64,000 nucleotides of DNA, taken from positions 15,004,001 through 15,068,000 of the forward strand of contig OZ249445.1 in NCBI GenBank assembly GCA_965235115.1. Reading direction: 5' to 3'. A program made the position numbers and the translations under genes. The notes below the pieces were generated by a model, which ran no database searches, was not told the origin of the DNA, and worked only from the letters and a program-made list of their open reading frames with translations. Position 1 is the stretch's first letter. Each line of letters begins with the position of its first letter. Origin of the DNA: Laetmonice hystrix (taxonomy: Eukaryota). Positions 3,606 through 49,242 of this stretch are shown here, one piece after another.

Positions 3606-3821
3606 TTACATCTTTTGGAACATATCATACTTTTCCTTCATTGAAAGGTTGTGGACCCGCGGATCGTTCCTTTTCCTGCTCCTGGCCCGGTTGAGTGCCT
3701 CCTGCAATGATCCAGCGAACGGGTCGTTACCCGCCGAGGTGGGTGGAGGCGGCTGGGTGACGTTGACGGGTTCGTTCACCACGGGCTGTGGTGCCGGGAC
3801 GACAGGTGGGGCTGGAGCTTT
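3606..3821 (-). CDS. NHERF: Terminal coding exon (phase 0): Pro-rich linker plus EBP50_C-like ERM-binding tail KAPAPP...FAGSLQEALNRARSRKRNDPRVHNLSMKEKYDMFQKM*
   Basis: Acceptor ttgtccatgttacag|AAA and TAA at 3608-3606. The last 13 aa (LSMKEKYDMFQKM) align without gaps to human NHERF1 MDWSKKNELFSNL, and the preceding SLQEALNRARSRKR aligns to SLAMAKERAHQKR. Confidence 0.85.
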   Translation of the reverse strand, partial: KAPAPPVVPAPQPVVNEPVNVTQPPPPTSAGNDPFAGSLQEALNRARSRKRNDPRVHNLSMKEKYDMFQKM

Positions 3822-18800: not shown

Positions 18801-21800
18801 GAAAGCAAAATAAGACAAGCATTAATCGCAAATAACCGCCAACAGTTAAAGTTGTAGGAGAAAAGGTTTTCACAGGATACTTCCACAGGCTAAGCACACA
18901 TACTGGCAGTTTACAAAACGTTTTAGACTGCGTACAAAAATTAGCTAAAATTAGCTAAGATACACGGAAAAAATCGTTATTATAGGAAAAAGAAATTCTA
19001 TACCGACTACACTTGGACTGACCCAATGCTGATTGATAGAAATATATAAACACTATGAATGAGACTTTGTCCCCGGTGGACTACACAGGCTGAGAACCTA
19101 CAACCCAAGCGTGGGGGCTGTGTCCAGTGATGGGAACCGGCATTTCCTTCACAACACCATGTGGAATATGGAACGCACTGAACAATGTATTCCCGATCTC
19201 TGGTAAACTCCTTAGATAATTTAGTAATATATCCACAGCCTGATCAGACCCTGGCATTTAAATAAGACCATCTCTTAAATAGAAAGTGGTAATTGTAGAA
19301 CTCTGTTTTTCATGATGTTCCTGTAGAAAAGACTCCCTTGTGACACCACGACCCGGCAGTTTCTATGTGTCACCCCACCAAGTGTGAGGGTGGGGAGGGC
19401 CAAATTTGAATTGACCACCGAGGACTTCATTGTCTAGTTTCCCTAAGAATTAGATCTTCGCTAACCCCATTTCTAATACGAACAAAATATCTATCAAAAT
19501 CCAAAGCAAATCCAAATGCCTTCGCCATAACAATGGCCTTCACTACTTTGGGTTGATCCACTGACTATTGCAGGGATAACGCTCTAAAAACCAAGTACTG
19601 CTATGAAGAGGAGCACCAGACATTAAACAGGACAGGAGCTTTACACAGGCTGTTGATAGCTTTGTGTCTGCTATAGTCATCTCTGGGACAAGCCAGTGCT
19701 CCACAAAGTAATGTTATCGCAAACATAACTCTCTCCAATCTCGTTATCCTCCCCATCTGACTTCTTGATGTCAATGCTCAGGGAAAGGAGTTCCAAATAT
19801 TTCTTGTAAATGATAGATTTTTCTGAAATAAAAAAAAAAAATCTCCTGCACTGCGACAGGGTAGATAGGTAGGTTAATCAGCCTACTAAGGTCGTTTCCT
19901 ATACAGCTCTATCAAATACGCAAAAAAAAGAAAGAAACAAAAAGACGTCTGTGAATGAATCCACATCATGTGTTTTCTGTATCTTCACATCCATGTGCTT
20001 TATACACCATTTTGTTTTCATGCACTTTGAAAAGAAACCATAACGTTCATGCAGGCTGGCGTCGAGAAGGCGAGGTCGGCCGTGCCTGCCGCCATCAGCC
20101 AGGTGAGTTCAGACAGTGAAGCTTCAACCAGTCACAGAGAGATATCCCACATCAGCTACCATTTATTTTAAGGTGGTAAGTTACTACTACTGGTTATATA
20201 AAGCAGAAATATTATTTGGAGAAAAAAATTGAGCCTCCTTTTCCCTGGGAGTTATGATGTTATACCGGTTCCATGCCTAGAGGGCTGTGACGGTCTTACC
20301 TCTGGGTTCCTCGGGTGGACAGGCCAAATGGACAACACTGGGCATGGATGCATTGGGCCAAATCCCTCGCTCCACATAATAACTGTTTGCAACTTCATCC
20401 ACCACCAAGAGTCGTACTTGGTTCGGGTCGCCAGTGATCCTGTTAACCACAGTGCGATGTTCCTCTCCTTCCACGCTGACGTCATTCACCTCGATAACCC
20501 GGTCTCCCTTCATCAGCCCGGCCAGGTCGGCGGGTGTCCTCGGCTCAACCCGGCCCACAAAGTTCCCCGTCTTGGTCTTGTCGTCATGGAGACGGAACCC
20601 GTAACCTGTGTACGTCGGCCATTTACGCAGGTGACAGAGTCGGATCTGAGGTTCTTGCCCTGTTGTCTGCGGCGGTGCCTGCTCCAGAGTGTCGATGCGC
20701 TCCACGACTGATGGCAATAGTATTTACAAGTCAGAGGGTGAGGTCTTGACCGTGAACTCAATATAACCAACTCTAACTACTCCCATCTCTGTCATCATCT
20801 ACATATGAAGACAGCCCAAAGGTCATAATGTCAATCATCAACCGGCCACAAGGGATTACTGTAATACAATGTATATGTGAAGCATTCCCTTGTTCAGTTG
20901 ATATGTGAGATGCGTAACGCCTAAAGAAGATTGACATGGGTAAAACATGATAATATAAATTATTCAATTATGTTTCCAGTGGTCAGAAATATTCTTGTCG
21001 GTTTTCCTATTAATGGATCTCCATGAACATATACATGAATATACACAAATATCATTAAATTAGCTGTTTCATGGATTAGTTATTTCATGTTTGTATGGGA
21101 AAGGGCAGTTATGGTTTTGATGGTATATTTAAATTCTACAAGGCTATACCTATACTCATCTAAATAAGCAAGCTACAATTAGTGTCAATGGTCTACCTAT
21201 AAACGGAAATGGAAACTACACCCAAAAAATATTCAATTGTCCTTTGATGCTATGAACTCTTGGTGGAATACACACTACATTTGTTTATAGTTCAAACCTG
21301 TTTTTTTTCTTGCAATCATGTGTTTCATTAAGAAATTTTAACTACTGAAAATAGTGATACAGCCCCCCCCCCCCCCCCCGCTTGAGGACGCCTGGGGCGC
21401 AAACTATCTGACTTGGATACTATATGTTAGCTTTAATGTAAAACTGCTAATGATTCAGTAACTGAAGTAGACCTACATGTAATTCAGTTGACAACATGAT
21501 TCATATAAATTGACTTGTTATATGAAAGGTGACAGTCAATACCCCTAAATACTTGCGAAGTCCTCCATATGAATTTCCTTTCTTCTTATCAAAGAAATAT
21601 TATTGTGTTGAACAAGTCGCTCACTCCCTACCTGACTAACCTCGCTTTTGTCTATATTGTGTAACCTACAGTGACCTAGCTTTCTTTTATCAAAAGTCAG
21701 TGCCGTCCAGTGACGTACAATCTCTATATCATGCCATATCATTAGAAAACAACGCTTTTTCTTCAATGGCAGTTACCAAGCAGCGTTCCCAACAAAATTA

Positions 21801-24800
21801 AAAAAAAGGCAAATGAATCAAGAAGTGACCGTCAAATTTATGTTCATAAAGGAAAAAAAACTGCCTTCCAAATGACGCCTGTATATCGGCATACCCGACC
21901 ACAATCCCTTCAATCTGTGTTATGCTGTGCATATTGATACCAGATATCAAGGCAGTACCCCAATACGTGAACGTGTCCTAGAACCTGAATCTGACCGAAA
22001 TCTCATAAACCAATGAAAGGTGTGCAGACGTTGTTAAAGCTCAGCAACCTTTGGACCCCTCTACACTAGTACTCCCGTAACCTCGTGTTATCAGCCACAA
22101 ATTGACTGCCTTAATTAACAAAGCCGTCCACAAAAATCAATGGTGTTAGACCTCACCACCAGCGGATAAGTTCCTGCAACAAACACAGGGTGGCGCTACC
22201 GATCTTTGAGTGATCCATGCTCGGCGGTGACGTGGTTCAAGGTAGGCCTAAACGTTTTGCAGTGGTTCCTGAGGCGAACAGTTAGTGGCAGTGGTGCGTT
22301 TCGCTCCGTCCGCCGCCAGGGGTCAGTGCGAGGCGGTATCTACAGGTTAGATCCCATCATCCAACTATGGATAGTAGTAGTACCTCCTCCATGATCCTTA
22401 CCTTCTCGGCGGTCGGGTGACGTCAGGTGGACGATGCCGTCAAGGCGCGAGTGCGGCCAGATCTGGTCGTACAAGTACTTGTTGACGACATCAGGGGGCG
22501 CCACCAGCATCTCGACATCGTCCTGGCGTGAAGTGATGCGCTGGATGACGGCGCTGTGGTCGTCGTTACGGATGCTCATACCGTTTACCTCAAAGATTTG
22601 ATCCCCGACCTCCAGGCCAGCCGCTTCAGCTGGGTAGCCTTCCTCTATGTTTCCAACAAAGTGACCTGGCTTTCCCTGTTCTTCATGAAGATTGAAGCCA
22701 TAGCCATCACAATCGTGCCACTTCCTGACAGTTATCAGTCTCAGTGTACGCGCAGGTTCGTGTAGGCCGTTAGTCTTCACCTCCACGGCTACAGGTACAG
22801 ATTGGCATCTCATTAGATTCCCTTTCTCTCTCTTTGGGGCCTGACTGGTGTAATTCTAGACCGTAAACTTTGTCTACGGATAACCGACAATTATCAGGTT
22901 TTTTCGATACCTATTCATCTCTACCCACCACCATGTATTAGTTCCCCCGCCTGGAGGTCGTGGTCATTGAAGGACAATTGTTATGTTGTCATGGAAACTC
23001 TGTCTGTAGAATCTATCTAATGGAGATTTAAAACATATCTTTTACACCAATTATATTGTGAAATATTAGGAGCAATACCTCCTTGCAGAAGATACACCAA
23101 TCTCCGCAAACAAACCATGTATGTATTTTTCTAATATATCCTTGATAGTGTGCAATTCATGTACTATTTTTATGAATCGAGTTGGTACACAAATGGCACA
23201 ATATGAATATCATATCAGTAATTAGGACACGACCCTTTTAAACGAGTAAGATTCTGAGAGACACTCAAGGCAAACGGAGACAGGAATGTTGCGCCTATTA
23301 CCTACATATGGCAGACGTACACCAAACATGCATGAGTGATTGAGTATGAAAGACCACGCCTGTGGGTGACGAGTGACGTGACAAGTTGTTTATACTGTGG
23401 TACTATGAGATTAATAATACGGTGTAGTAGAGCCAGGAGATGGCTGCCACTGGCAGCGGTCTCGGTGTTAACACTCAAACCTACTAGCAGTAGAAGTAGG
23501 AGCAGCAGCAGGCGCGGCGGCCCAGGGTTAGTTGGAGTTTCAAACGGTGCATGTCGGCGCCGACGCTTACCTTGGACAGGAGCGTCCCGTTCTGGGCAGT
23601 CAAGCACTGTGATGTTGGGCAGGTCACAATGTGGCCACATCCCCCGGGACCTGTAGAATTGGTCGGCGTCAGTGTCCGCCACCAACAGTTCAACCTTGTT
23701 GTCCTCCGACTTGACCTTCTTGATCACCTCATAGTGGTCGTCACCGAACACGCTGTGACCGCCTACCTCAATGATCTTATCCCCGACTCGTAGGCCTGCT
23801 GCCTCGGCCGGCGAGTCGGCATCTACGTTGCCCACATAGTGCCCTGGTTTGCCCTTTTCATCGTGCAGGTTGAATCCATAGCCGTCGAAGAACTTCCACT
23901 TTCTGAGGCGACAAAGTCGCAGCATTGGGGCTTGGTCTTCCTCTACGACAGGTTTTGGGACTTCTGAAGCAACCGCTACGACAGTCGCTGCTTCCATATG
24001 GTTAGCTGTTTAAAAATCCCAGGTTGTTTTACCAAAACAATCCCGTTGAACATATATTTGTTAGCCCGATCTATCAAGTCGTCATATTCTTTTATATAAT
24101 GTAAGTACAAGTCTGCTGGGACTGGACATATGAAACTATGAGAAGAATTATTTACCTTCTTGAACAAGAACAAAAAACTCAAACTTGAGAACCTATCTCG
24201 TCTTAAACTTACAATATCTACATAACAAATTACAATAAATACTATCATGATTCGACATAAATGTACCCTAAAGCAAAGAACTTATAATCACGTCATCTCC
24301 ACACACTGCTTTAGACTAATAATGAGGAACTCGTGGTACCTCAGATATTAGTTGTAGTTAATGAAGGCGTTAACTGTTTGCCCTGAACCACTCACGGTCA
24401 TCAGTTAAACCCATGTTATCACTATAACTAAGAGAAAATCTCATTATTATATTAGACATAGCGAATGCCAGGATGGCAATCGTATGATCTGGTCATTATT
24501 GACTGAGGACTACGTTAGCACTACTATACTATGCTATAGTCAATTAAACACTAAGACTACTTCCACACGTTACAAAACGAGTACATAACACACATACCTA
24601 AACAAAGCTTCACGAAATGTTACAAGCAATTTGAAAAGTTAAAGCCATCACTACAGTAGGACAAACGGTATGCACAAAATAATTTATTGTTTGATTATAT
24701 GGGACTTAACTTCTAATACATGCTGTTTGTTACGTTTATACCTTCTACGCAAACTAGCAACTAGTAGGTTAAATTAAAACTACAAATCAAAGGTTGTTAA

Positions 24801-25215
24801 GTTCTTCCTTATTGCTTTTAAACCACAGTTTGAAGCAATAAGCAAAGGAACCCCAGGTCTTCCTAACCCACATAACGCAGATGCCATGAGGTTTTTTTGA
24901 TATACCAGATACCTTGAAACGAAATGCTCAATTTATCTATGAGCACTATGTTGAGAAACTTTGTCATCAACTTAGAAATTTTTGGCATGAACGAAAAAAA
25001 TGTGTGAAATGAAAGCAGACGAAAGTTGATGACCGAACAACTAAATGTTGTGTCCGTCTCCATGACGACAGATTCCCGGATGATGACCGCTGACGTTTTA
25101 CTACGTCTGACGTCATCCACCAATGGTGGTGGCCGGTTGGTGGTGTTAGTATTAGGTGTGTTAGTCTGACGGAGTGTGTTCAGTACGGGTTAAATCAATG
25201 GGTGGGGGTGGGGGT

Positions 25216-25246
<31 letters not shown>

Positions 25247-28200
25247 CAGTAGCCCAAGTGGAAGTCTTGTCTTAACCAAGACTTGCAGCTTACCTGAGGA
25301 CTGACGATCTGGACACTGAATGACGTGCACGTTGTCCATCTTGCTGTGCACCCAGATTGACTTGTCCTGATAGTACCGTTCCGTGTCAAGGTCCACCACT
25401 AGCAGATCGACATGGTCGCTGTGTTTCTTGATATGTTCCACCACCTGTTGGTGAGAGTCTTCCAGAGCGTTGTGGCCGTTCACCTCCACTATTTTATCGT
25501 CTTTCTTCAGACCAGCGGCGTCGGCCGGCGAGCCGGTGTCGACGGAACCGATCAGGTGGCCTGGTCTCATCTTTTCCTCATGGAGGTTAAACCCATAGCC
25601 GTCAAAGTCTGACCACTTTCTGAGGCAGCAGAGGCGTGGCCGAGGGCCTGTCTCGGGTGAAGCTGTTGGTGGCAGGCCAACAAGGACAGGACCGTTACAT
25701 ACGTCAATAAACACAAATAATCGGTCGAGTTCAATCAATGCCCTCGAGCTGAAATCCTCAAGTTAAGAATTTCATCTTTTGGTACTTAAACCACATACAA
25801 GGAATTCCCACTGCACCCCAAACAGATCAATGCAAGAATTCATTGCTATCAGAAACACTGGAAGTCCTCAAGTCGTTTACAAGACACCGCTGATATTATG
25901 TATAGTTATAACCTAGTGAAAGATTGTGGAAGAATAAAACAGCAGTGAGTGAACGTGATCGATCAATGCTGCACCAAGTACATCAATACAGAACAATCCT
26001 GAAACAGAAAGTACACACTCCACGACGACAAAATCTGGTGTTAGTATCTACCGACGATACATTATGATGGAAGGAAAAAGGTTCAAAGCAAAATGACAAA
26101 TAGGGTGGGAAAATGTAAACTTAGTGGCAAAAATACTAGGAAGCGACTGAAGACTAAAAATAGTAAAATATTAGCAATATGTCTCAGTAACAGTACATTT
26201 TTCACCGTTTGTACACGGTAAGTTAATTCTCCCTCCTTTTGAAACCACAGGTCACACTTATTGTTCTCTCACCAGCAAGTACCACTAAATCCACATTCCC
26301 TTAGAACCTGTTATTTTCAAACCTATTTGTAAGTATCTAATCCACAGAGTGACGACCCACCAGTATACGTCACGTATGACGAGTTCGTCGAGGCCTTCAT
26401 TCTAGTTAACCAATTCATATTAGAAATGGCATACTACAGTTTCCTCCTTAACGTATAATTGGACAGAGTTTCTGGTTATACTTGGTTAATTCAAAACTAA
26501 AGTAGCCTGTCGATATGTAAAGTATATCCCTTGTAGATTAAAGCATGAAGTGTCCGCGCGTGAAACCTTAACTTCTACAAACCACCAAACCCTGCCCGTG
26601 TCATACCACTAAGTAACGACAGGCGAGTGTAACAGTGAACCATAGTTTGACACATTATGACTCAGAGTTTGATACATTATAAAACAGAGTTTGAGTAATT
26701 TCAAACCATGAAAGTCTCCCACGACCTGCTACTGCCTAAGGACTGTGAGATGATCTCTCTATCAGCACAGCCATCCTGGCTGATTTCCTGGGCAGCAACC
26801 TTCATACTGTGTTAGCCTGTTGATCATGTGACCTGTTAAAGGGTGACTTCAACGGTTCTCATTAGGTAAGAGTGCTGGATGTGCATTGCTAACGTGCAGT
26901 AGTTGTCCTTCCCAGTACTGAGCCCTTGTCTGGCTTATTTGTAATATAACCAAACAGAACACTCGAGGACTCTTACCTGTTACGGCCACATAGGAGGAGT
27001 CCATTACGTCCAGCCCTGCCATTTTGCTATCAACTGTGATTGACTGGCTTTTGAAGTACTTTTCAGCCTCAGAATCGACCACCAAGAGTTGGACTTCATT
27101 GGGGCTCTGAATGATCTTTGCCACCACCTGTTTGTGGCTGTCACCGACAACGTTTTGACCGTTCACCTCAACTACTTTGTCCCACTCACGTAAACCAGCG
27201 GCATGGGCAGGAGAGCCTTGTTCTATTGCGGTAACCAAGTGGCCTGGCTCGTTCTTCCTCTCTTGGAGGTTAAAGCCATAGCCAGTGTAGTCAGGTCTCG
27301 TCTTTATGTGGTAGAGGCGGGCTCGTGGACCTGTGCCTAGTAGAAGGTATGTCGCTATTTATGGCAAAGATTTGTCAATTCAAATTTTTACCAGAGATAT
27401 GAAATTATGCAGATCTAATATTTAACCTTCCACCTACAATTATTACTTAATGACACCATTCCAGTTTTGTATTAGTTTCAGACACGTAGAACAAGTACTG
27501 TGAGATGTACTCATTAAGAACCAAATGGTGCATAAATGGATTGGAGCTGATGTGAAAGAAATATCAAGATGTCAACTATCCTCCAAAATTGTGAGCAAAG
27601 GACACCAAATTTACATCATTGGAATGCCAAAATGGGATACTCATGAAGATATTTTCTTCACACTTGTCTTTTTAAGTCGTTTGAATTGCAGTTTCTTTTT
27701 TTTGTATTTGCAATTTTAAAAAGGTCGTCAGCCAGAAGAAACCAATCTTTTTTCTCTTTTCCTAAGATGCTATTGTGTTTTGGTTTCTATACTCTATCTT
27801 GTTCTCGGGTACTGTGAATATGATGGTGCATTCCTTCAAATTCAGCACACTTTGGCTGCATCTGAAATGTGTGCTTTATAAACAAATAAAGTGCTGTGTG
27901 CAAGGGTGAGGATGATACTATAGGTGCAAGGTGACACAGACTCAATCTACAGTACATTTAATTTTCATTTTTAATTCAATGTTTTGATTGTTTTTTTTTT
28001 AGTAAATCCTAATTATCTGAGCGTGATTAATCTGTGATTGCCAGCACACTGAAGCACAAAAACCGTACTTGAAAGAACACAATAATGGTTCACACTGCCT
28101 CACTTGACTGTAGACCATTGAACCAACACCTTAATGTTAGCATGTGATTTCAATGTTCCAGTGGCAATAATTAACGTGGAATGCTAGTAGTTCCCAATAC

Positions 28201-31200
28201 CAGGCCCATCTGTGTTATACAGCCAAACGCCCTAGGACTCTTACCTGTTACGGCCACATAGGAGGAGTCCACTACGTCCAGCCCTGCCATTTTGCTATCA
28301 ACTGTGATTGACCGACTTTTGAAATATTTTTCAGCCTCAGAATCAACCACCAACAGTTGGACTTCATTGGGGCTCTGAATGATCTTTGCCACCACCTGTT
28401 TGTGGCTGTCACCGACAACGTTTTGACCGTTCACCTCAACTACTTTGTCCCAATCACGTAAACCAGCGGCATGGGCAGGAGAGCCTTGTTCTATGGCGGC
28501 AACCAAGTGGCCTGGCTCGTTCTTCCTCTCTTGGAGGTTAAAGCCATAGCCAGTGTAGTCAGGTCTCGTCTTTATGTGGTAGAGGCGGGCTCGTGGACCT
28601 GTGCCTAGTAGAAGGGTACGTCTCTATTTCAGGTAAATTCTTTTTGTTCAAAACAGCCTGTATTTCATGGCAATTATTATCATCATAAATGTTACACGTT
28701 CTAAACTAATTTCTGTTTAAACATATTAAACATAATATATTATAGTTATTGCATGTTTACGACTATCAGGACTTAATATCCAGTAACGAAAACATCAAAT
28801 CCAGTGGCATTGATAGAATGGTTTTTTTTTACCAGACATCATGATATTGTCCATTTTAAAAAGAAGAGTTGTTAATTACTAGTACTATATCGATATGATT
28901 AGAGACTGTACTGTTTACCAGTGCAACAGCAACTCTTGCCACCATCCTTTTATTAGATTGTACGTGAACAACTTACAACAGTTATATCATGTCACGTGTT
29001 GTGGTGAAGTCACAAAAGCTGCGTGTAAGAGCCAGGACCCAGTTCCTAAAAACTTAAGATCTTGCTGAAGTTTAACGTTTCTGATTGCCTGGTCTAAGCA
29101 GACGAGCCAATCAGAAACGTTAAGCTTAAGCTTAAACAAGAAGTTTTTAGGAACTGGGTCCTGGTCTGTGAACAAGTTACCGACATGCAATCCCTTGGGC
29201 ACACCCAAGCCCAACTTATCTGTTACCCACATTAATTCCTTTGTTATAGCACCATCCTGAATGCATACCTTAGGCAACTTATTTTATACATGTGTATTAT
29301 GTATGCTTTACTTAGGTGCCCCCAACACCAGGTAAATTTGTCATCATTTCTTTTTTTTCTTTTTTTCCCATAACTTTTTTAGTGCAGTTCATCACTATGT
29401 TATGGAGCAATAAACCTTTGTCGACGCCTGTGTTATATGACAGCAGCCACCACTACAGGGTTAATGATGTGTGTTGGTTTAAGTCACATTAACCCCTGCC
29501 TGCCGCTGTGGTTCGCCTGGTGCAGGGTTAGTTTGGGTACTTACCCACGGTACCCAGGTGGGGCGTGACGTCATTGACGACGACGGTGGCCGGGGCCTGT
29601 TGACGGGAGACCAGGAGGGCCTGTTGACCGGTGACCGGGATGGCCTGTTGACGGGTGACCGGGAGGGACTGGCTCCGGTAGTAGTCGTCCGTCTCGGCCG
29701 TCACCAGTAAGAGCTTCACCCGGCCCTCCTGCTCCTTCACCTTACGCACGACGTCATCGTGCGAGGCGAGCACCACTTTCATATCGTTTACCTCGATGAG
29801 CACGTCGTTATCGCGTACCCCGGCCGCCTCCGCCGGTGACCCCGGCTCCACGGCGCCGATAATGTGCCCCGACCGATGGGCCTGCTCTTGGACTTCGAAC
29901 CCGTAGCCGTCAAAGTCGGGCCGCAGGGCCAGGTTACATATGCGGGGATGGATACTTGGGGGGTTGACGACGTCCACTGACGGGGAGGCTGAACAGGACC
30001 AAATGAGAACACCCAGTCACCCACTGCAGGCATAAACCGACACTCACACCGGCAAGTAGAGGTTTCCCTCTCAACCATCATACACAAACCTGTGATTGCA
30101 TTCTCCAAACCCTTCCTCTCAATGTATCGGTTTGATGGCACCATACAAGTCATCATCTATCACTACAAGCCAAGCCAACAATTTGCTTTAGCCATCTGTG
30201 CATCATTTACACACAAAAAACTCTTCTTTTTCAATGGTTTCATTCAATCTGGTTTCGTCATTCTTGCCATATCGATCATAAAGCGATTGTTTATGACCTG
30301 GTAAGGTCAGTGTCCAACTGTTGGTGATCACCACACCTGTCACCTTCCATACCTGCCCGCCACCTGGTACAGTGTCGCCACCTTGTGGCCCCTCTGCACA
30401 CCCCGCCAACCGCCGGGCTGCCAAGTGCAGTCTGCATCATATGTTACAATTTCCCTGCCAACTCTGATTAAAAACCGTAAGAAAAATTCCATCAATATCT
30501 TGCAGCCAAAGAGTCACTTTCTGTTAAAGCACTCATATAAATAAAGTGTCTTCCCGACGGGAACTTCTGGCATAAGTATTGTAACAAAACAAATGCCGAC
30601 TCTTCTGTTAATCATGGTGTTAAAGCTCCAGTGAATCTTTTAGCGTGATGTGTTACTATTTCTAGACTAACTAACGAATTAAAGTTCCTGATTTCACAAT
30701 CATATTGGACGTGGGCCCTTTGTGCGTTACTTGTTAAAAGCTCAAGGTATCTTTACATGTGTCGGCATTGAAAGCAATGGCTTGTAACCATTCACCATTA
30801 GTGGCGTGACCTACACCATTATATAGGTCAACGGTTGGCACATCATTATGCATCTGTTGGATGTCATGTTTTATACATGGGCCTACCTCCTGTTTCACTT
30901 CCAAGCTTGCGTGTGTTTTTTTAACAGCAGTGAGTCTCGAGTCATTTTGTACAAGCTTGTCTCTGCTAGATCAGAGGAAGATGTGAGAATGCCGATGTAA
31001 GCACCCCGAAGCCGGATCCAAACGCACACAGATCCAAACGGTCAGACTCTCTCCAAGTTCTCTTCTGAACCAACTCCGTACATGAGCATTCCATTAGTCT
31101 CCAGGTTAGCCAACTGTGAGATTCATTTGCATTCCGTTTTATTTTTGTAATTATTTCTGGTGAGGAGGCGGTTAAGTCCCTTGAATGCAGCGGTAGTTGC

Positions 31201-40200: not shown

Positions 40201-43200
40201 CTGCTCTCTCCTTCTAAATAAACTCGACAAAAACATATATCATTTTGTCAACCTTTTCTCCTTAACAACCTACCATATATTTCTCTCATTCTATTCTATT
40301 TCTCAGGCAATTTGTTCTGGTTCCAGTGCAGACAATCATCCCTCAACGTGGATCGAGTGTTATCAGAGGTCGAGTTTTTCATGAAAATATATGTCGTTAA
40401 CAAACACATGTCATAGTCACATAGCATTGACTCTGCGCTTGGCCTAAATAATTTCACAACATATTCCTACAACGATATACATATAACTTGCCATGAATAC
40501 AAAATGTATCTACAAGTGCAGTATGTTGAAGAAGTACTTGAAGAATGTGAATTGTTTATTGCCCAATTTTTGTTTAATTCGCGTTCAGTCAGCTTAGCAT
40601 TTCCTGCTGCATTACATTTGGTTGATTCTAACCACAACCTGAGGAGATGAAAACAGACTGTGTGTCACTTCAACAATATCCATCCCTCCATTCCACACAC
40701 GTACCTGACTCATGTATACGTAATCTTCAACCCTCACTTGTCTTACTCTAACATATGCAGCATGGATTCATAATTTATAGTCCTCATTTAATTCCTTCAT
40801 CATTAGGTCGGTGGTCACGATGGCCCGAGGGTTCGTGAACTCCCACGTAGGCCCGTCACATGTCGTGTCACCGGCATGTGGTGACACCTGAAAGATATCA
40901 ACCAAATGTCAACAGGAAATCCTTCCTGCTTTTCCCACTCAGGTGGGATGGCACTCCTGCAAAGACACCTGGTTTTTCTTGAGGCTTGGCTGACCGCGGT
41001 CCTCCCAGCTCACCATCTGGGAAACACTCAGCATTGCATAAAGCGACAAGTTCGGGAAGAGATTCAGGTCACGTTCTAGGCATCCATCTGAAATACAAAC
41101 AAAACATCATGCCCTGTCACCTCCAGGGGAGGCTGGCCTGGCGTCCTCCGGCCTCCATTCTCACTGATCTTCTACTGATGAATCGTCATGACAACCACCA
41201 CGGAGCAGCAACAACAATCAAATCTCATCTAGCGATGTCTTGATGGGTCTTCATCGTAAGGGGATTTCTTGATTGTCCGGTAGGAGACTTAGGTCAAATC
41301 TAGACGTCTACTGGGTATTATTCTACATCTTAGCTGAAACACCCAACTAAATTTTCCACCATAGCAGTAACAGGAAGAGAACGAGGACCTTCCACAGTAC
41401 AGGGACAGACAGGTATTCATAGATGTCCACTGGTTGGAGAGATACACCGTGCTGCCTGTCAGTACGCCAGAGCCAGGGAGTGGGTACCATATGGTGGGTA
41501 TGATCCACAACCAAGGGGAATCATTAGATGACCCGTTGGGTAGGGGTGGGTGGGAAGGAGGAGGTCCTATTCTAGAAGACGGTGGATTCCTTGCCGGCAG
41601 GGTGGTAACTACTGCCTTACCTTTGCTGGGCTTGCGGTCAGGGCATGTAATGACCTCCACTTCCGACAGCCCACTATGCACGGTCTTGCCCTTGTTATTG
41701 TAGTACATCTCCGTCTCGTTATCTACGACTAACATAGAGACTTGACTAGGGCTCCCCTTGATCCTTTTCACCACGTCTGAATGTTTGTCATTCAGTGTGT
41801 TGTCCCCGTTCACCTCCACGATCCTGTCCCCTTTCTTCAATCCTGCCGCCGCCGCCGGGGAGTCGGCCTCAACCACACCCAGGAAATTCCCTGGTTTGTT
41901 CTTTTCGGCGTGGAGGTTGAACCCGTAGCCCTGGAAGTCTGGCCATTTCTTGATGTGACAGAGGCGCGGGCGTGGGCCTTTATCTTCTACAACAGCTGCT
42001 GTTGTTACGGCTGCGGCTACTGCCGTTTCTGTGACTACGTCAGCTGTTTCTGTTTTTGCTGTTGTTGCTGCGGTTGCTAGAAACGTATGAGTACATGCAA
42101 ATAGCAATCCGTAAGGTCACCTTTTAAAAGGCCTACGTCTATTTCATTTTTCTGCGAATAGCCTACAATGGAGAAGTAATGTTTTGAACTTCCTCTAACC
42201 CACTGGATACTTATCGTCATAATACCAAGACGAACCACTACTGCCGTCAACACTTAAATCATCTGATGTCTTTGCTATAACATCAGACAAAAGCTGACTT
42301 CACTCTGTAAATCATCTCCTACAGTATTGAGTAATTCCGCAGCATGTCAAAGCTGGAAACAATCTCTTACAGTATTGAGTAATTCCGCAGCATGTCAAAG
42401 CTGGAAACAATCTCTTACAGTATTGAGTAATTCCGCAGCATGTCAAAGCTGGAAACAAAGCTAACGCAGACAATAGGTATGAGATTTTTGTGATCGTCAT
42501 CCCATTGCCTCGAATCTGCTTACGTCATAGGTGTCGGAGTGGAGGGATGGGGATAAGGTAGTAGGTTATAGAAGGGAGAGTGTTGGGATGACCTCATGCT
42601 CACCTCCAGTCGCGGACATAGCGGGATCCTGGTCAGGACAAACCATCACCTTCACGTTGGCCATGTCGCCATGAACTTTCACTCCGAGCTGCCGGTAGTA
42701 GGCGTCCGTCTCCTCGTCTATCACAAGTAAGCTCACCTTTCCCAGCTCGGCCGTCACTTTGCCAACAACCACGCTGTGGCTGTCCTCAAACACGTTACTA
42801 CCGTTCACCTCCACCACTATGTCGTCTTTCTTCACGCCCGTTACGTCGGCGGGGGAGCCACTGTCTACGGTCCCGATCACGTGACTGTTCCTGGTTTTGT
42901 CAGCGTGCAGATTGAAACCGTAACCTTTGCCGTCCGACCATTTCTTGAGGTGGCACAGACGGGGGGAAGGAGCGTCTCCGGCGACGGTTGGGACGGCGGA
43001 CACGGCCATGACGGCGGCGGCACTCGGGCCGGCCAGACCGCTCACATTCACGTCTGGTTCTGGCTTCGACTCTGCTTCTGGTTCTTCTTTAGCGTTAACT
43101 TCATCTTCTGCTTCAACTTCGGTAGCCACTGCAAGTGCTGCCACAGCGACCACCTCCTCAGGCTCGGGTTCATACAGGTCCTTCTCGATTCCGGGAAGTT

Positions 43201-46200
43201 TCTCTGGAATTGGTGGAGGTTGCTCCTCTGTGAGGCAAACATGAGCCACGCAATGTGAAGAGCTCATCCTTTAAAACACATTCTATGTCCCACTCGTTTT
43301 TCTTCACTGGTCACTACATTGTTAGAGTAATGATCATGACCTTTGAAAGGCACTCTACAGCCAATCTCCTCTCTGAATTTACGTTTTAAGACCTTACTTT
43401 ATCAAGACATTGGGATGTTACTATTCGTGATTTTCACTGAAATCGAAAAGTTTCATCGATTATAATTTCTTTACTGACATTCAGTCATATTGCTAAGAGA
43501 CTTGACTTGCGTGATATTTTAACAATACACAAACTACTGGCTAAGTAAAACGGACTTATAACACTAAATGTTTGTTAAAAATTACGTTTTGATTCACTTC
43601 TTACCAGGTTTGTAGGGTTCAGGTGAGGCTTACCATGAGTATGACTAATTCAGAAATCAACTTACCTCTTATTTACCATAATAAACGTTTCAAGTTTAGA
43701 AATAGAATTATCTCATAAAAGGGGATTCCTGAAAACTAGAACTAGAGGACTAGATACCTATACAACCTATCCAACCTAAAAATAACGGAGGGAACATCTA
43801 ACTACCAGTACCGCACTAAGGGAATCATCACGGGTTTCGAAATGGAGGTTTACGTAGCACACAGCGAGTTTTAAGCCAGGGTTTCCACTTATACACAGGA
43901 GAGATTATGCCTTAACAAGTACTAAATTAACACTAATTAAGGATAGGTACTTTAAGAACTGGACAGTGGTTTCCTCATTCATAATCTGCCACAAATTATT
44001 ACCCCCTAAAGCGGAAGTGTAGAACCCCCAACGCTGTTTTCTGAATTAAATATTCTACTGTTTATAGCAGTCATCTCAGACCTATGCAGCCACCGGCGCA
44101 GAAACAAAACGGTATATTTCACTCGGTGCTGTGTGGACAAGACAGTGAATGCACTGACCCGTGTAGTAATCGACAGCCTGTGTGTGGTGGACATGGCTCA
44201 GCGAACAATAATCATATGGATTCTGGCTCCTTACCTGGCACCCAGATGTGATTATCGATCAGTGGTGCACCGATCGGAATGCCGGCCAGGGTGTGGGTGT
44301 GGGTGTGGGTGTGGGTGCGGGGGGGGGGGTAGTGGATGGTATGGAGCCATCGAACGGTTGGCCACACCTACAGTGTCTCTCCGCCTGTTAACTGCTGCCA
44401 CTTAGCGCTACAATATCACACCGTTATAACGGGAATACGTGATGTACCCATACAATGTGACACTTGTGTTAACTCGCCCCATAACACCATGACCACTCAG
44501 CTTTAAGTGAGCGCTACTCGGAACAAACGCTTCCTACGTTAGCAGGCACAACTGCTCAATTACTCCACCCGTCTGGGGTTGGTATGGTTTGGATCACGCA
44601 AACTTCTCTCCAAGAAGGGCTGCCTGCCTTACAATCCGCACCCTTCCCTCGCCCAGCTCTGTGTGCTGTCAGGCATGATTGCCAGCCCCGGCGTGACGAC
44701 CCACTGACGTCGACAAGATCTGTCCTCAATTCACGAAAATTACTACAAGGTCTTCTCCGATCACTGGAAACAACTATAGCGTTCTCCACCAATTTGGGTA
44801 GCAATAACTGCAATTTATCCCAACTGAGAGCTAACCAAATTCTCAACACGATTCAATGATTCCCCCCGGTATTCTATAATTTAATATAATTTCTATACAA
44901 AAAACCTCTTGGTGCCTCTTATTTCAGCCTTATCTTTTTCACATTTACTAACATTGGGTCCGCTAGCACACTGACTTATTCGTGCATTCCAAGATATACT
45001 AATATTATGTTATTTACGTCAAACTAAAACCTTCTCCGCCGACTGCATGCTAGTCTGACTGCTTTCTTTCTGCCTACTGTGAGCAGTCCCAGAAACGGAG
45101 CAGAAATAGTAACCAGGAGGACCTGGACTGAGAATTCTGAAAGTGTTTATCTTTGCCTCCAGTTCTCTATCGTCGTACCGATACTCCCCTCATCTTCAGC
45201 CAGAGCCCGATTCCTGATATCCAGTCCCTCTTCCCACTCCCCAACCCTATTATTGGACCTCGCCCCTGCCTTCTTCAGATATCAACCAAATGAAGCCCCT
45301 GCCTTCGCAATCCTGATACAACTAGCCTCGCCTTCCGACGTCAGGACCTCTAGCATTGCCGGTTGCCACCAATGAGGTCAGACCTCTCACTCTATCACAC
45401 CTTTACACGCAGTCACTGAGAGCCCACTAATTACATGGACATTCATTAAGACCTACTTGTCCCAAGATCAGGTCATATGACTGCCCAACCATTGTTATGA
45501 CAATCTGTGACAGCCTCCAAACTTCCTGGTTTTCTCAACACACATAGTACAGTAACCAATCATGTAGTAAGTGCCAGTAAACTTCGCTTTACATAGGGCC
45601 TTTCCCTGCCAGTAAACTTCGCTTTACATAGGGCCTTTCCCTGCCAGTAAACTTCGCTTTACATAGGGCCTTTCCCTTCCAGTAAACTTCGCTTTACATA
45701 GGGCCTTTCCCTGCCAGTAAACTTCGCTTTACATAGGGCCTTTCCCTGCCAGTAAACTTCGCTTCACATAGGGCCTTTCCCTGCCAGTAAACTTCGCTTT
45801 ACATAGGGCCTTTCCCTGCCAGTAAACTTCGCTTTACATAGGCCCTTTCCCTCTCACCTGTAAACTCGAGTCATTATTCAAATCAGGAACTAGTAAACAA
45901 CGATAGAGTGATCTCGGGTATTTTTTAGGATGACCTTGCTGGGCCGTATTGTGGAGCGTGTCTTCAAGGAATGTCACGTTTAACGCAAGATCTTTGCCCA
46001 TCCCATCCTTCGCCGTTAATTTCCACATCACTCTGACAAGGTATGGGTACCTCACCTCCACTGGCAACTAACTTTACAATCATACTTTACAACTTTACAA
46101 CTTACAACTTTACAATAGATTTTTACTATGCCTTATCTGAAAATGCTGTACGGTCAGGCAAGAAATAAAATTAAAAGTTACTTTGGCAACACAAACCAAG

Positions 46201-49200
46201 AAGTCCGTGACCTCTTTCAAGGTGTCCCTTACCTCCTATCACACATGAATTACGACACGGCAAGTGGCACAGAGCACACATGTACTGTCACTAGAAGAAA
46301 TGCCCTCTGGATATCCCATAAAGAACGCTTAGGACTACGTTGTACACCGCTACAAATAATTTCCTGTGAGAAACCCCAGGACAGCCAGTTCAGTTAGGTC
46401 GGCCCTACACACACACCCTCCCACCCTGTACGAGCTCAAGCGTTGAGAAAATATGGGACTTCATCCTGTAAGTCTTCCAAGGTTACCTATGTATCCCTTT
46501 TAGGTTTATGGGTGATACTGTTATAGTCAATCTGGTCATTAGGTCGCTATGAAGAATGAAACTAAGATTCTGTCATTCTTGATAGGTGACCTTGAATTGA
46601 GGTTTCACATGACACCTTCCAAACAGACTCTCCTCACTGAAGGCCGAGCTAGTAGTGCTTGGTTCCAAAGGACGGTAGAGCTGTAAATGTAGGATACATG
46701 TATATAACAACGCCGGAGAGACATCCTTCCTCCTTCCCACCACACCCAACAGTGACGTCATTCGTCATTGAATATGCTTCACCTAACAATGGGGGTTTGT
46801 TCTCACACTCATTACGATCGGAAAACTGGGTCTTCCTACCCTTCACTGGTCTCTCTACAATGTGCTGTTCTCACACTCATTACGATCGGAAAACTGGGTC
46901 TTCCTACCCTTCACTGTTCTCTCTACAATGTGCTGTTCTCACACTCATTACGATGGGAAAACTGGGTCTTCCTACCCTTCACTGTTCTCTCTACAATGTG
47001 CTGTTCTCACACTCATTACGATCGGAAAACTGGGTCTTCCTACCCTTCACTGTTCTCACTACAATGTGGCTATACAATTAGATATCTAGACGGCAAAATA
47101 TTTCTAGGTTACCACATTTTCTTTTCATTTCAATAACTGGCACATCATCGCGCCGAGATAAAGACACAACAAGAAAGCATAACATTATTGTGAAAATGTT
47201 CATGTCAAGGTTATTTCAGCCATTCATCTTTAGAAACGGTAGGGGAATACCTCTGCTATCGTCAATTAACGATGCAACCCGAGTATATCATCATACACAA
47301 GCAATAAGAAATCTATTTTTCAGTGCGACAGGTAACATAATTAGTTTTAAAAATGGAAATTATTCAAATGTCTTCATCTGAAATAGGCACGTTTTTATCA
47401 CAGATACCAGATTGTAAGAAACAAGAATAAATTTAGAACGTTAGCCAACTGGTAAAATCGTATAAATTTACACACAAAAATTGTGAGCAACTGACACCCC
47501 CCGCCCCGCCCACTCTGCCACTATGAAACCGAATAATTATGACATAGGCCTATATCGCAAGGCTGAAGCGACCGGCAGAATTCTGCAAATATCCATCTCC
47601 CAAAGTAATTGATGTCTACCTACCGGGGGTAGTCCATTCTACTTAAAAAAGAGTTACTTAAAAGCTTGTACATACATGTACTGTAGCACTATAAACTAAT
47701 TTTAGTGGCCGGTTAGCAATGTGCCACACAGCAGGAGATTAAGGCAGCCAAGCTTCAACATTATAGCTTTCCCATGACTGGTCTTTCAATAACAGTTAGA
47801 TTCCATCAATTGGCTCATTTACGGTAATTGACTATATGCCCCATTACTATTATATCGGAAACGCATTAACAAAGAGCGCGCAGTCAACCATTCCAAACGT
47901 TCCCCTAAATGGTGATATCCCTTATATCAAATCTGGGTAACATCCAGTAATATGAGTGGTCATACCCATTGGAAGCTGAAATAACTCTAAATATGTGAAC
48001 TTTTTACGTAAATTTGTGTTTTATTCTGACTACCGGTACTAAGATTACGTCAGAAACATGTCCTGGAGACTAACCAGGTAGTACTACCGTCATGTACACG
48101 CAATTACAACGGGGATCACCCCTCCCCCCCCCCTTACAAAAAACTGGTGACGGCAAGATACTGAATATTTCTCCAGCTTTTCCTGAAAATAAAACTGTCC
48201 AAAAATGGACCCTTACTTAGTCGGTTATGCTAGTATCGAAGCATTCTTATAAAGACATGAGCATGCTTAAGGTAATTTGAATGGGAAGCGAACCAACCAT
48301 ACCCAACTTACCCCGGTACTTAGGCCGCTATAATTATTGCTATAAATCACAGTTATTATTAGTTCTATATTAGGTTAGAAACCACCGAGTGTCAATCTTA
48401 ACCAACTACAAGAAGGTTACTTACACAAAGCGGACAAACACTGACACCGACATAACACTGTCTTCAACAACTTTTGACACTTACAAACTTTAGGTGTCCT
48501 TTTTGTTACAATGACCTTTTGCTGCTGACTTTAAACATTTAAATTTAATCAGGCAGTTTGAGAAAAGAAATCAGATCTCATCGTGTTACAATGTGGTCTC
48601 AGATACAGTGTTTTAACTTGAGCTCTGTCCCGCCCGGGCGACTTTCTTTGTAATTTCCTTGTGATTTTGCGCCATTTAATTGATACCCATCCCTGTTTCT
48701 GACAATGAGTTCCACACTTTAAAATTAGAAAGTGATGTCAAACTCGCAAGGAATTCACAAGCAAAATCGGCAGCCAGCGACCACGGACCTTAGGGATCCC
48801 TCCACCTTCCCGACCATGAGGCCGGCCCAGGTGTTCCGACCCTGGATTCGACCTCTGACCTTTGACCCTGGCTCACCTTCGGCGTGTCTGTCTGGAGTTT
48901 GCCTTGTAATAACCTGCGGCATGTCGCCGCGTACGACGGTACCGCGCTGCGTGTAGAAGTCGTCTGCCTCGCGGTCCAGTACGAGCATGGTGACCTGGTC
49001 GGTGTGCGCCTTGATCCTCGACACCACCTGTTGGTGATTCTCGCCGCCAATGTGCACATCGTTAACCTCTACAATCCGGTCACCCTCCCGGAGACCTGCC
49101 GTCGAGGCCGGAGAGTTGTCGTCCACCTTGCCGATGTACTGGCCCGGCTTGCCCTTCTCGGCGTGCAGGTTGAAACCGTAACCTTGGAAATCTGGCCACA

Positions 49201-49242
49201 GCTTCATCACACATCGCCGAGGGTGCGGCTCCTCTTCAGGCT
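3606..49242 (-). CDS. NHERF: Giant NHERF/EBP50 (SLC9A3R)-family scaffold gene: 16 PDZ domains, long repetitive low-complexity region, C-terminal ERM-binding motif; about 27 exons, about 4,000 aa, 5' end not resolved
   Basis: 16 minus-strand ORF segments carry the NHERF-type PDZ signature PRLC..[21 protein letters not shown]..AGL...D.IVEVNG......H..VV..I. The terminal exon matches the spacing of the NHERF FERM-binding motif. All exons have AG/GT boundaries that join in frame. Confidence 0.88.
5927..9289 (-). CDS. Giant repetitive exon (3363 nt, 1121 aa, phase 0-0) rich in E/V/R/S/Y with ETVRYE and SSYEIRSS repeats
   Basis: Uninterrupted 1143-codon ORF 5885..9316. Strong acceptor tcgtgtttccttcag|CCC at 9289. 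The 3' end is either a modest donor TAT|gtatgg at 5927 or read-through to TAG at 5885. Confidence 0.8.
10458..10547 (-). CDS. Phase 0-0 cassette exon, MNGDAYIESNNVEVTKEAMPVNEIIQVEPE
   Basis: atctttgtgtatcag|ATG...GAG|gtgaga; 90 nt; in frame with neighbours. Confidence 0.75.
10831..10908 (-). CDS. Phase 0-0 cassette exon, MNGMEKEAEVIETGAAISVVEVTAEE
   Basis: tatgtctcacaacag|ATG...GAG|gtgaga; 78 nt; E/V-rich like neighbours; not shown in the ORF track. Confidence 0.75.
11935..12180 (-). CDS. Phase 0-0 exon, Thr/Val-rich (AGVELVRNGATD...TTATTTTTTTTA...TEFVSYQ)
   Basis: gtgattgtacag|GCT...CAG|gtgagg; 246 nt within ORF 11866..12192. Confidence 0.75.
12328..12381 (-). CDS. Phase 0-0 small exon, IKRRGSEKFETITTTGAE
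   Basis: cttgattcccgtcag|ATC...GAG|gtgagc; 54 nt; contains an RRGS basophilic (PKA-type) kinase motif. Confidence 0.7.
12704..12766 (-). CDS. Phase 0-0 small exon, IVRQVDMVVEESVETVTSQDE
   Basis: gtacgtactcgcag|ATC...GAG|gtgagc; 63 nt. Confidence 0.7.
12918..12980 (-). CDS. Phase 0-0 small exon, VAEYTKRSHASVVREFVSNKE (tandem NAGNAG acceptor could add a Gln)
   Basis: acgtttgcagcag|GTC...GAG|gtgaga; 63 nt, open in phase 0. Confidence 0.6.
14099..14236 (-). CDS. Phase 0-0 exon, VVEVAETNGHTADVEAV...EPSPEPVRQLTPEPDRQPSPVPE
   Basis: tttttaccgcatacag|GTG...GAG|gtgaga; 138 nt within ORF 13952..14419. Confidence 0.78.
16013..16636 (-). CDS. Phase 0-0 exon, 208 aa, Tyr/Asp/Arg/Gly-rich low-complexity region
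   Basis: gtatgtatttccag|CGA...TTG|gtaagc; within ORF 15899..16648. Confidence 0.7.
17134..17220. repeat. 3 x 29-bp tandem repeat, each copy carrying the 12-bp palindrome GACAGCGCTGTC
   Basis: Units start at 17134, 17163 and 17192 (ctgacagcgctgtc...ttaacaggcg). Confidence 0.9.
17574..17620 (-). CDS. 47-nt phase 1-0 exon, (V)SQTNGQVTTAVEAAQ, linking the PDZ block to the tail block
   Basis: Strong acceptor ctattttgttctacag|TT and donor CAG|gtaggg; the phase change needed to join PDZ16 (phase 1) to exon 16636 (phase 0). Confidence 0.75.
20300..20707 (-). CDS. PDZ exon 16 (RLCHLRKWPTYTGYGFRLHDDK...)
   Basis: ttgccatcag|TC...G|gtaaga; 408 nt, phase 1-1. Confidence 0.9.
22402..22788 (-). CDS. PDZ exon 15 ([26 protein letters not shown]...)
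   Basis: ctgtacctgtag|CC...G|gtaagg; 387 nt, phase 1-1. Confidence 0.88.
23571..24005 (-). CDS. PDZ exon 14 ([26 protein letters not shown]...)
   Basis: gatttttaaacag|CT...G|gtaagc; 435 nt, phase 1-1. Confidence 0.9.
25217..25252 (+). repeat. (CAG)9-TAG-CAG-TAG trinucleotide microsatellite just downstream (in transcript direction) of the PDZ13 donor
   Basis: Read directly; encodes Leu12 on the minus strand in frame with PDZ13. Confidence 0.9.
25294..25662 (-). CDS. PDZ exon 13 ([22 protein letters not shown]...)
   Basis: ctgccaccaacag|CT...G|gtaagc; 369 nt, phase 1-1. Confidence 0.9.
26977..27336 (-). CDS. PDZ exon 12 (RLYHIKTRPDYTGYGFNLQERK...), near-identical to exon 11
   Basis: ccttctactag|GC...G|gtaaga; 360 nt, phase 1-1. 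Confidence 0.88.
28245..28604 (-). CDS. PDZ exon 11, near-identical to exon 12
   Basis: cccttctactag|GC...G|gtaaga; 360 nt, phase 1-1. Confidence 0.88.
29032..29164. mobile_element. 133-bp fold-back, MITE-like element
   Basis: Perfect 24-bp terminal inverted repeat CCAGGACCCAGTTCCTAAAAACTT (29032-29055 / 29141-29164) plus an inner 16-bp inverted repeat TTAACGTTTCTGATTG (29072-29087 / 29108-29123); no clean TSD. Confidence 0.65.
29545..29988 (-). CDS. PDZ exon 10 (RICNLALRPDFDGYGFEVQEQ...)
   Basis: ggtcctgttcag|CC (alternative phase-1 acceptor at 29976)...G|gtaagt; 444 nt. Confidence 0.88.
31205..31645 (-). CDS. PDZ exon 9 (RLCSLRVWPKVSGYGFDLVEEK...)
   Basis: Donor G|gtaagc is clear; acceptor is either cttcttctggcgaag| (31645) or ggaccag| (31621), both phase 1. 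Confidence 0.87.
31975..32484 (-). CDS. PDZ exon 8 with 8-aa VVPEVEVP repeat linker (RLCCLRVWPQVSGYGFDLFEEE...)
   Basis: cttcttctggccataatgtag|TG...G|gtaagg; 510 nt, phase 1-1. Confidence 0.87.
32737..33207 (-). CDS. PDZ exon 7 (RLCCLKTWPDVSGYGFDLRQEK...; alphaB His replaced by Leu)
   Basis: ttgttctccgtggtcag|AG (a closer phase-1 acceptor ccag|AT is also possible)...G|gtaaga. Confidence 0.87.
33667..34356 (-). CDS. PDZ exon 6 with 17-aa QIPVVVTANQIAVREDD repeat linker (RLCVMKKMPNDLSYGFDLLEEE...)
   Basis: gatcctactccag|CA...G|gtaagg; 690 nt, phase 1-1; a shorter acceptor (caagcag|CT) could exclude the repeat. Confidence 0.82.
35149..35532 (-). CDS. PDZ exon 5 (RLFILYKWSDFVGYGFDLYHER...)
   Basis: ttttgatgtcag|GA...G|gtaagc; 384 nt, phase 1-1. 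Confidence 0.9.
36473..36832 (-). CDS. PDZ exon 4 ([21 protein letters not shown]...)
   Basis: cattgcttctag|CA...G|gtaaga; 360 nt, phase 1-1. Confidence 0.9.
39249..39321. repeat. 3 x 23-bp tandem repeat gcacggctctgatggcacccaca
   Basis: Three identical units read directly. Confidence 0.9.
41621..42076 (-). CDS. PDZ exon 3 ([26 protein letters not shown]...), canonical NHERF type
   Basis: catacgtttctag|CA...G|gtaagg; 456 nt, phase 1-1. Confidence 0.92.
42314..42458. repeat. 3 x 48-bp minisatellite
   Basis: acagtattgagtaattccgcagcatgtcaaagctggaaac recurs at 42321, 42369 and 42417. Confidence 0.9.
42604..43227 (-). CDS. PDZ exon 2 with acidic/Ala-rich linker ([22 protein letters not shown]...)
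   Basis: gtttgcctcacag|AG...G|gtgagc; 624 nt, phase 1-1. Confidence 0.9.
45572..45851. repeat. 8 x 35-bp minisatellite tgccagtaaacttcgctttacatagggcctttccc
   Basis: Head-to-tail units with single substitutions and no spacers. Confidence 0.95.
46798..47068. repeat. 4 x 68-bp minisatellite
   Basis: tctcacactcattacgat recurs at 46801, 46869, 46937 and 47005. Confidence 0.93.
48877..49242 (-). CDS. PDZ exon 1 ([33 protein letters not shown]...), the most canonical NHERF PDZ
   Basis: ggttgctatgttacag|AG...G|gtgagc; 366 nt, phase 1-1. Confidence 0.92.

Follow-up and report, generated by a model that had tools for sequence, protein, structure and literature searches.

Does an array of exons that can be joined in frame in any combination amount to a splicing code, or does its symmetry follow from the way in which the array arose? 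The question is raised by a stretch of 64,000 nucleotides (nt) from Laetmonice hystrix (contig OZ249445.1, positions 15,004,001 to 15,068,000; G000:C11:15004001-15068000 in the coordinates used below), hereafter called the window. Within it, a first-pass annotation had described 16 successive exons, each carrying one PDZ domain, and had proposed that cargo specificity and valency could be programmed by a Dscam-like choice among them. The reading that we consider probable is a different one, namely that a tandem-duplicated array of NHERF-type PDZ exons, symmetric by inheritance and joined in order, forms the middle of a giant scaffold gene of the NHERF family. It is carried by direct observations on how the exons are built, on the family to which they belong, on the ability of one unit to fold by itself, on four splice junctions between successive exons and on the ancestral phases, as found in a relative; that all exons are constitutively included, and that a distant exon 1 is linked to the array, is what we infer in addition.

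Exon anatomy of the PDZ array

The flagged stretch covers 29 kb of the minus strand, in which a combined motif and open-frame scan found exactly 16 units with a GYGF-type loop. A Pfam PDZ match was obtained for 10 of the 10 units scanned (10 of the 16 were run), with E values of 1e-7 to 1e-14. The boundaries of the exons were deduced from features common to all units. The donor occupies the same position relative to the domain in every unit, in phase 1 and a few codons past the conserved C-terminal extension, while on the other side an upstream stop closes each PDZ open frame and an AG acceptor lies within that frame, leaving two leading bases (phase 1). With the best acceptor taken for each unit, the exon lengths range from 360 to 690 nt and sum to 7065 nt, and all 16 exons are stop-free and multiples of three. 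The 16 intact exons, each with one whole PDZ, their 1-1 phases and the outer coordinates 20300 and 49242 were therefore found as the first-pass annotation had given them, and so were the donors. These read G/GTGAG for PDZ1 and PDZ2 (AAG/gtgagc and GAG/gtgagc, the slash marking the splice site) and G/GTAAG for PDZ3 to PDZ16 (NNG/gtaag). The exons are as follows.

48877..49242, minus strand: PDZ1 exon, 366 nt, phase 1-1, donor AAG/gtgagc; closest paralogue of the first-exon PDZ found outside the window
42604..43227, minus strand: PDZ2 exon, 624 nt, with a long acidic N-terminal linker; donor GAG/gtgagc
41621..42076, minus strand: PDZ3 exon, 456 nt, donor AAG/gtaagg; used as the HMMER query
36473..36832, minus strand: PDZ4 exon, 360 nt, acceptor 36832 or 36829, donor CAG/gtaaga; no cover by RNA-derived contigs
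35149..35532, minus strand: PDZ5 exon, 384 nt, donor AAG/gtaagc; 35149 is joined to 34356 in a spliced contig
33667..34356, minus strand: PDZ6 exon, 690 nt, linker formed by an in-exon 51/99-nt tandem repeat; acceptor 34356 confirmed by a contig
32737..33207, minus strand: PDZ7 exon, 471 nt; the sole unit without the alpha-B1 histidine; 32737 is joined to 32484
31975..32484, minus strand: PDZ8 exon, 510 nt, linker with six copies of a 24-nt repeat; both ends confirmed by contigs
31205..31645, minus strand: PDZ9 exon, 441 nt, with a 33-nt linker repeat and a 3-nt indel allele at 31628; acceptor (~31645) and donor 31205 confirmed
29545..29988, minus strand: PDZ10 exon, 444 nt, the most divergent unit, with a 24-nt repeat in its C-terminal tail; acceptor 29988 matched by RNA
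28245..28604, minus strand: PDZ11 exon, 360 nt; protein 97% identical to that of PDZ12
26977..27336, minus strand: PDZ12 exon, 360 nt
25294..25662, minus strand: PDZ13 exon, 369 nt; modelled fold with a PDZ core, a C-terminal helix and a strand
23571..24005, minus strand: PDZ14 exon, 435 nt, acceptor 24005 or, in the same phase, 23963
22402..22788, minus strand: PDZ15 exon, 387 nt, acceptor 22788 or, in the same phase, 22827
20300..20707, minus strand: PDZ16 exon, 408 nt, donor GAG/gtaaga

For PDZ4, 11, 12, 14 and 15, alternative acceptors lie 3 to 42 nt off in an unchanged phase, so that the symmetry of the exons is independent of the acceptor chosen. Four of the acceptors (34356, 32484, 31645 and 29988) and four of the donors (35149, 32737, 31975 and 31205) were confirmed by spliced contigs of RNA origin. 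These contigs came from one of four runs of a single sample, three of which were genomic; the remaining run, X4, was recognised as RNA-derived by its spliced contigs. The RNA-derived contigs were examined over 6 kb, from PDZ4 to PDZ9, and contigs of this kind drop rare isoforms.

The last base of every PDZ exon is G and any junction codon is therefore GNN, which makes a stop impossible in any combination of exons. With lengths divisible by three, phases 1-1 and GNN junction codons, the claim that any subset of the exons can be joined in frame is arithmetically true.

Encoded domains and the origin of the symmetric frame

Alignment of the 16 exon products showed a common PDZ core followed by a conserved extension of ~30 residues that reaches nearly to the donor, with length variation confined to the N-terminal linker and arising in part through tandem repeats within the exons. 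In the GYGF loop, the tyrosine, the second glycine and the phenylalanine do not vary, and at least 90% of the units retain the loop's first glycine and the alpha-B1 histidine. Both marks of a class-I PDZ of the NHERF type, the loop and the histidine, were thus present. Since these residues are conserved and the frames are intact, all 16 units look functional.

The fold was modelled for one unit of the 16, PDZ13. The AlphaFold2 (AF2) model of this exon had a predicted local distance difference test (pLDDT) score of 92.4 and contained a helix (91-99) and a strand (112-115) beyond the core, with only the last residues disordered; this is the extended PDZ fold with a C-terminal helical extension. 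The best PDB matches of the model were the extended PDZ2 and PDZ1 of human NHERF1 (2kjd, 6rqr and 2m0t), followed by NHERF2 and PDZK1, and a profile built from the 16 exons retrieved NHE-RF1/2 proteins first. On the strength of the alignment, the PDZ13 fold, the structural matches and the profile search, each exon is predicted to be one complete, autonomous extended PDZ of the NHERF type.

The linker-coding repeats lie at 34070-34347 (PDZ6, 51/99 nt), 32323-32470 (PDZ8, 24 nt), 31552-31625 (PDZ9, 33 nt) and 29593-29671 (PDZ10, 24 nt). The 3-nt indel allele at 31628 was found in one DNA run as well as in an RNA-derived contig, so that linker length is polymorphic.

Pairwise identity among the units is 26-64%, the exception being PDZ11 and PDZ12 at 97%. 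These two exons are ~97% identical in DNA as well as in protein (6 synonymous and 4 nonsynonymous changes, counted by hand on the alignment), but their flanking introns are unrelated, with homology extending only ~25 nt upstream of the acceptor and a few tens of nt past the donor. A recent duplication of the whole unit was rejected on these grounds, and the likeness looks like exon-confined gene conversion instead.

The origin of the phases was approached through two relatives, Bulinus truncatus and Priapulus caudatus, whose loci were mapped from protein to exon. The snail, Bulinus, has a canonical two-PDZ NHERF gene. Its exon 1, with the ATG and PDZ1, closes in phase 1; its PDZ2 unit consists of two exons of 149 and 301 nt that together run from phase 1 to phase 1; and a 41-nt exon after this unit returns the frame to phase 0 before the tail. 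The same skeleton was found in L. hystrix, where exon 1 ends in phase 1, the PDZ units lie between phase-1 introns and a 47-nt exon leads to phase 0. As judged from these gene structures, the symmetric frame is ancestral and the array is in all likelihood the Bulinus-type skeleton with its PDZ unit multiplied. Since phase 1-1 already surrounds the PDZ units of the two-PDZ snail gene, an explanation by a splicing code is not needed. A tandem duplication preserves the frame only when the duplicated unit is symmetric, an established principle for class 1-1 modules (Patthy, PMC8001218). The earlier remark that the symmetry goes with exon duplication accordingly holds, but the 16 phases do not count as separate events, since duplication passed them on from copy to copy.

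The Priapulus locus, LOC106807044 (XP_014664746-XP_014664751, "uncharacterized protein"), was the best HMMER match of the PDZ3 exon. It encodes 11 NHERF-type PDZs and a tail, with eight of the PDZs each in one symmetric exon of 369-426 nt, and it likewise has an array grown by lineage-specific tandem duplication; its single-exon PDZs, however, are in phase 0-0 rather than 1-1. In a tree of the domains, clades made up of window units alone were found for PDZ6-9 (support 98/92) and PDZ11-12 (100/100) and, more weakly, for PDZ2, 4, 5 and 10-15 (80/79), while PDZ4 and PDZ6-10 of Priapulus formed a clade of their own and only the first PDZ was clearly orthologous across taxa. Single domains in same-phase exons of a length divisible by three were thus found in 16 of 16 cases, with copies that are mutually closest, the larger window clade being the weaker. 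The lineage-only clades together with the differing phases indicate that the two arrays arose by separate amplifications, each on its own intron phase.

The following course of events is proposed. The ancestral NHERF gene would have had phase-1 introns on either side of a PDZ unit, followed by a short exon that restored phase 0. A one-exon version of the unit, comprising the extended PDZ and its linker, would have been duplicated in tandem many times in this lineage, every copy inheriting phase 1-1 and a G/GTRAG donor, since only a symmetric exon duplicates without a frame break. The copies would then have diverged to their present 26-64% identity, with one pair recently homogenised. The default product would be a transcript with the exons in genomic order, presumably with all of them included, and it would encode a class-I PDZ scaffold of high valency, whose PDZs would number 16 from the window, or 17 with exon 1 if that exon is linked to the array as supposed.

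Splicing of the array

The RNA-derived contigs provided four junctions within the array. Spliced contigs joined 35149 to 34356 (PDZ5-6), 32737 to 32484 (PDZ7-8) and 31975 to ~31645 (PDZ8-9), the last on the allele with the 3-nt deletion. The PDZ9-10 junction (31205 to 29988) was deduced from a 28-nt loose end after 31205 that is identical to the start of the PDZ10 exon. All four, out of the 15 junctions of the array, connect neighbour to neighbour, and no non-adjacent PDZ-PDZ junction was present in the contigs of this one run over the 6 kb from PDZ4 to PDZ9, where rare forms would be invisible. Neighbour-only junctions are what constitutive inclusion predicts.

Several points weigh against inclusion of every exon. 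Only 4 of the 15 array junctions were seen, in contigs of one small run from which minor isoforms are lost, and RNA-derived contigs were missing for PDZ4 and for parts of PDZ6 and PDZ7. Nor need inclusion be constitutive, since one annotated isoform of the Priapulus homologue leaves out precisely one PDZ exon. The presence of all scored NHERF-type PDZ matches of the genome at one locus could also mean that shorter isoforms are needed for ordinary NHERF functions. Protein collections were searched for the organism's own transcripts with HMMER (PDZ3 exon) and with the 16-exon profile, and both returned other species only, at identities of at most ~64%.

Low-depth RNA-derived contigs were also found in the PDZ4-5 intron, at 36213-36363 and at 35533-35570, the latter comprising the 38 nt upstream of the PDZ5 acceptor. 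They probably derive from unspliced precursor RNA; an extra coding exon was considered for the first of the two pieces and was rejected, as stops occur in all three frames.

The same junctions bear on the combinatorial code of the first-pass annotation, in which regulated choice among many of the 2^16 subsets would set cargo specificity by a Dscam-like logic. In Dscam-type clusters and tandem duplicated exon substitutions (PMC9013439, PMC9741552), homologous exons of the same phase likewise stand in tandem through exon duplication, but one of them is chosen per mRNA, whereas here exons of the array are spliced to one another. Since neighbouring exons are joined in RNA, mutual exclusion of the Dscam type is excluded. 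The exons of the present array are, furthermore, whole domains of unequal length.

Nor was the docking and selector pairing of such clusters found in the introns, where the first-pass annotation had suggested looking for it. Three approaches were used: an inverted-repeat scan of the array yielded a single local hairpin; a count of 12-mers against shuffles found none whose reverse complement occurs in three or more other introns; and an all-against-all blastn-short comparison of the introns on both strands revealed no position able to pair with two or more of the others. Duplexes that are short or imperfect could escape scans of this kind. No shared intron motif was detected beyond 12- to 16-mers at chance level, and the donors are uniformly of consensus strength across the array.

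In favour of a code, in-frame joining of any subset is real, the 26-64% identity among the units is divergence enough for differing partner preferences, and the locus appears to be the sole NHERF gene of the genome. Set against this are the joining of neighbours, the lack of docking and selector complementarity and of a motif common to the introns in the scans described, the uniformly strong splice sites, a symmetry that is accounted for by ancestry and the lack of isoform evidence of any kind in this organism. Of the combinatorial proposal, then, the symmetric and freely joinable exons stand, but no data support a regulated Dscam-like choice among them, and such a code is considered extremely improbable.

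A milder departure from full inclusion is ordinary frame-preserving exon skipping with no combinatorial code, in which most transcripts are full and one or a few PDZ exons are skipped by tissue, tuning valency or partners. The exons are well built for it: all have lengths divisible by three, their junction codons are never stops, and each is an autonomous fold (one of them modelled), so that removal of one spares its neighbours. Class 1-1 modules are described as well suited to frame-preserving skipping, and symmetric modules of such lengths have been called particularly suited to it (PMC8001218). In the Priapulus gene, moreover, precisely the 375-nt PDZ5 exon is absent from isoform X4 and a 138-nt linker exon from isoform X3, from which the skipping of single exons appears possible in this kind of gene at the level of annotation; these isoforms are, however, computed models. 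Against skipping in L. hystrix, the two genes differ in their splice sites, as the donors of most single-exon PDZs in Priapulus deviate from the consensus (gtacat, gtacaa, gtatac, gtattg) whereas those of L. hystrix are consensus G/GTAAG or G/GTGAG. As for PDZ4, its lack of an RNA-derived contig would fit a skipped exon, but a hole in contig cover proves nothing, and no non-adjacent joint occurred within the 6 kb of RNA-derived contigs. Limited skipping of this kind is regarded as possible but unlikely, and joining of the exons in order as the probable default.

A further Priapulus isoform, X5, was rejected as a splice form. In it, near-identical exons (KQ715074.1, L001 14194-14589 and 16342-16731) meet at homologous internal points with no canonical junction, so that an artefact of repeat alignment or a copy-number variant of one unit is the likelier source.

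Some further features of the introns were recorded. The single sizeable hairpin of the array lies in the PDZ10-11 intron (29064-29131) and is a 32-nt inverted repeat, 88% complementary, with a 4-nt loop. Near-perfect minisatellites occupy the introns after PDZ1 and PDZ2, at 45572-45852 (35 nt, eight copies), 46798-47068 (68 nt, four copies) and 42314-42458 (48 nt, three copies). Just upstream of the PDZ8 acceptor, in the PDZ7-8 intron, the interval 32485-32560 contains dense small indels in two DNA runs, including a 13-nt insertion after 32513; because these runs are from one sample, its two haplotypes differ there.

The wider gene and its relatives

A 17th NHERF-type PDZ was found beyond the window, at G000:C11:15075345-15075773 on the minus strand (L006:1441-1869). 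This exon starts with ATG, ends in phase 1 at the donor CAG/GTGGGT and sits ~7.3 kb past the high end of the window, ~22 kb upstream of PDZ1. Over 141 residues its product shares 65% identity with the N terminus of a 7-PDZ protein, P0166, encoded on a short 4.3-kb contig. The exon is very probably the true exon 1 of the gene, as suggested by its ATG and sequence matches, in which case the PDZ1 of the first-pass annotation would be the second PDZ and the protein would have 17 PDZs. On the other side of the array, two features appear to correspond to the end of an NHERF gene.

17574..17620, minus strand: 47-nt exon, phase 1 to phase 0, stop-free, with a good acceptor and a good donor; corresponds to the 41-nt exon in Bulinus
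3606..3854, minus strand: open frame with the likely last coding exon, a C-terminal tail of the NHERF type ending in KEKYDMFQKM before the stop

The tail aligned with that of Priapulus (E value, 2e-7) and resembles the Bulinus tail by eye, while the Pfam EBP50_C model gave no match to it at 3606-3854. It is a candidate for the C-terminal ERM-binding tail of NHERF1/2, and its joining to the array in one transcript is putative. Large non-PDZ exons lie downstream of the array. A 1143-codon open frame at 5885-9316, also downstream and in the same orientation (minus strand), contains repeated units of the form VETVRYE(I/V)R(E/D) and SSYE(I/V)RSS.

A search of the 627-Mb, 35-contig genome gave at least 17 NHERF-type PDZ matches, all in this locus, with E values of 1e-18 to 1e-97; the best candidates only were scored, and 17 is therefore a lower bound. 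No separate canonical two-PDZ NHERF gene was present among these scored matches, and the locus appears to be the only NHERF gene of the genome.

The position of exon 1 also bears on whether the array might be divided into several transcription units, with promoters or polyadenylation sites in its two longest introns (5.6 kb after PDZ1 and 4.8 kb after PDZ3) splitting it into shorter NHERFs. These introns far exceed the rest in length and contain satellites and long open frames, and the low-depth RNA-derived contigs of the PDZ4-5 intron might be taken in the same sense. The PDZ exons, however, start in phase 1 behind an in-frame stop and lack an initiator context, so that every unit would require a separate, unseen first exon that ends in phase 1. 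The only exon found with both an ATG and a PDZ lies upstream of the entire array, and stops occur in every frame of the intronic RNA piece. A division into several units is accordingly thought very improbable, and a single gene with the array in its middle is preferred. Block skipping of the symmetric exons might in principle yield graded scaffolds, from a two-PDZ NHERF (exon 1, the last PDZ and the tail) up to the 17-PDZ giant, an outcome that we consider improbable. If true, block skipping from a single gene would replace the vertebrate set of NHERF1-4 paralogues by splicing.

The gene is an unusual variant of the known NHERF family (NHERF1/EBP50, NHERF2, PDZK1/NHERF3 and NHERF4). It shares with that family the class-I PDZs with a GYGF loop and the NHERF1-type C-terminal extension, its best matches in sequence and fold to NHE-RF1/2 and PDZK1, a first exon with the ATG and PDZ1, and a tail like that of invertebrate NHERFs. 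It differs in having 16-17 PDZs rather than 2-4, each in a single symmetric exon, and in its large non-PDZ downstream exons and a tail in which EBP50_C was not detected. In being a very long intracellular protein made up almost entirely of PDZs, it resembles the 13-PDZ scaffold MUPP1/MPDZ, which belongs to another PDZ lineage (E value of ~1e-40 for MPDZ versus 0 to 1e-245 for NHERF-type arrays), has an L27 domain and has PDZs that are not recent tandem copies.

Among other multidomain proteins, the differential splicing of titin is well known. Titin, twitchin and others are class 1-1 module proteins that arose through duplication or shuffling of exons (Patthy, PMC8001218); like the present array, they have one autonomous beta-rich domain in each symmetric exon and a junction codon of the glycine type, and they were amplified in tandem. 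PDZ, however, is not mentioned once in that review.

A literature search found no paper on NHERF arrays of this size. If all exons are included, the gene would be a striking yet conventional product of tandem exon duplication, its 16-17 PDZs exceeding the 13 usually quoted for MUPP1. It would show clearly how an intracellular domain can be amplified as a class 1-1 module, alongside the independent phase 0-0 amplification in a priapulid, and would be useful to studies of exon duplication and scaffold valency. Were regulated, patterned exon choice to prove true, it would represent a new way of diversifying an intracellular scaffold.

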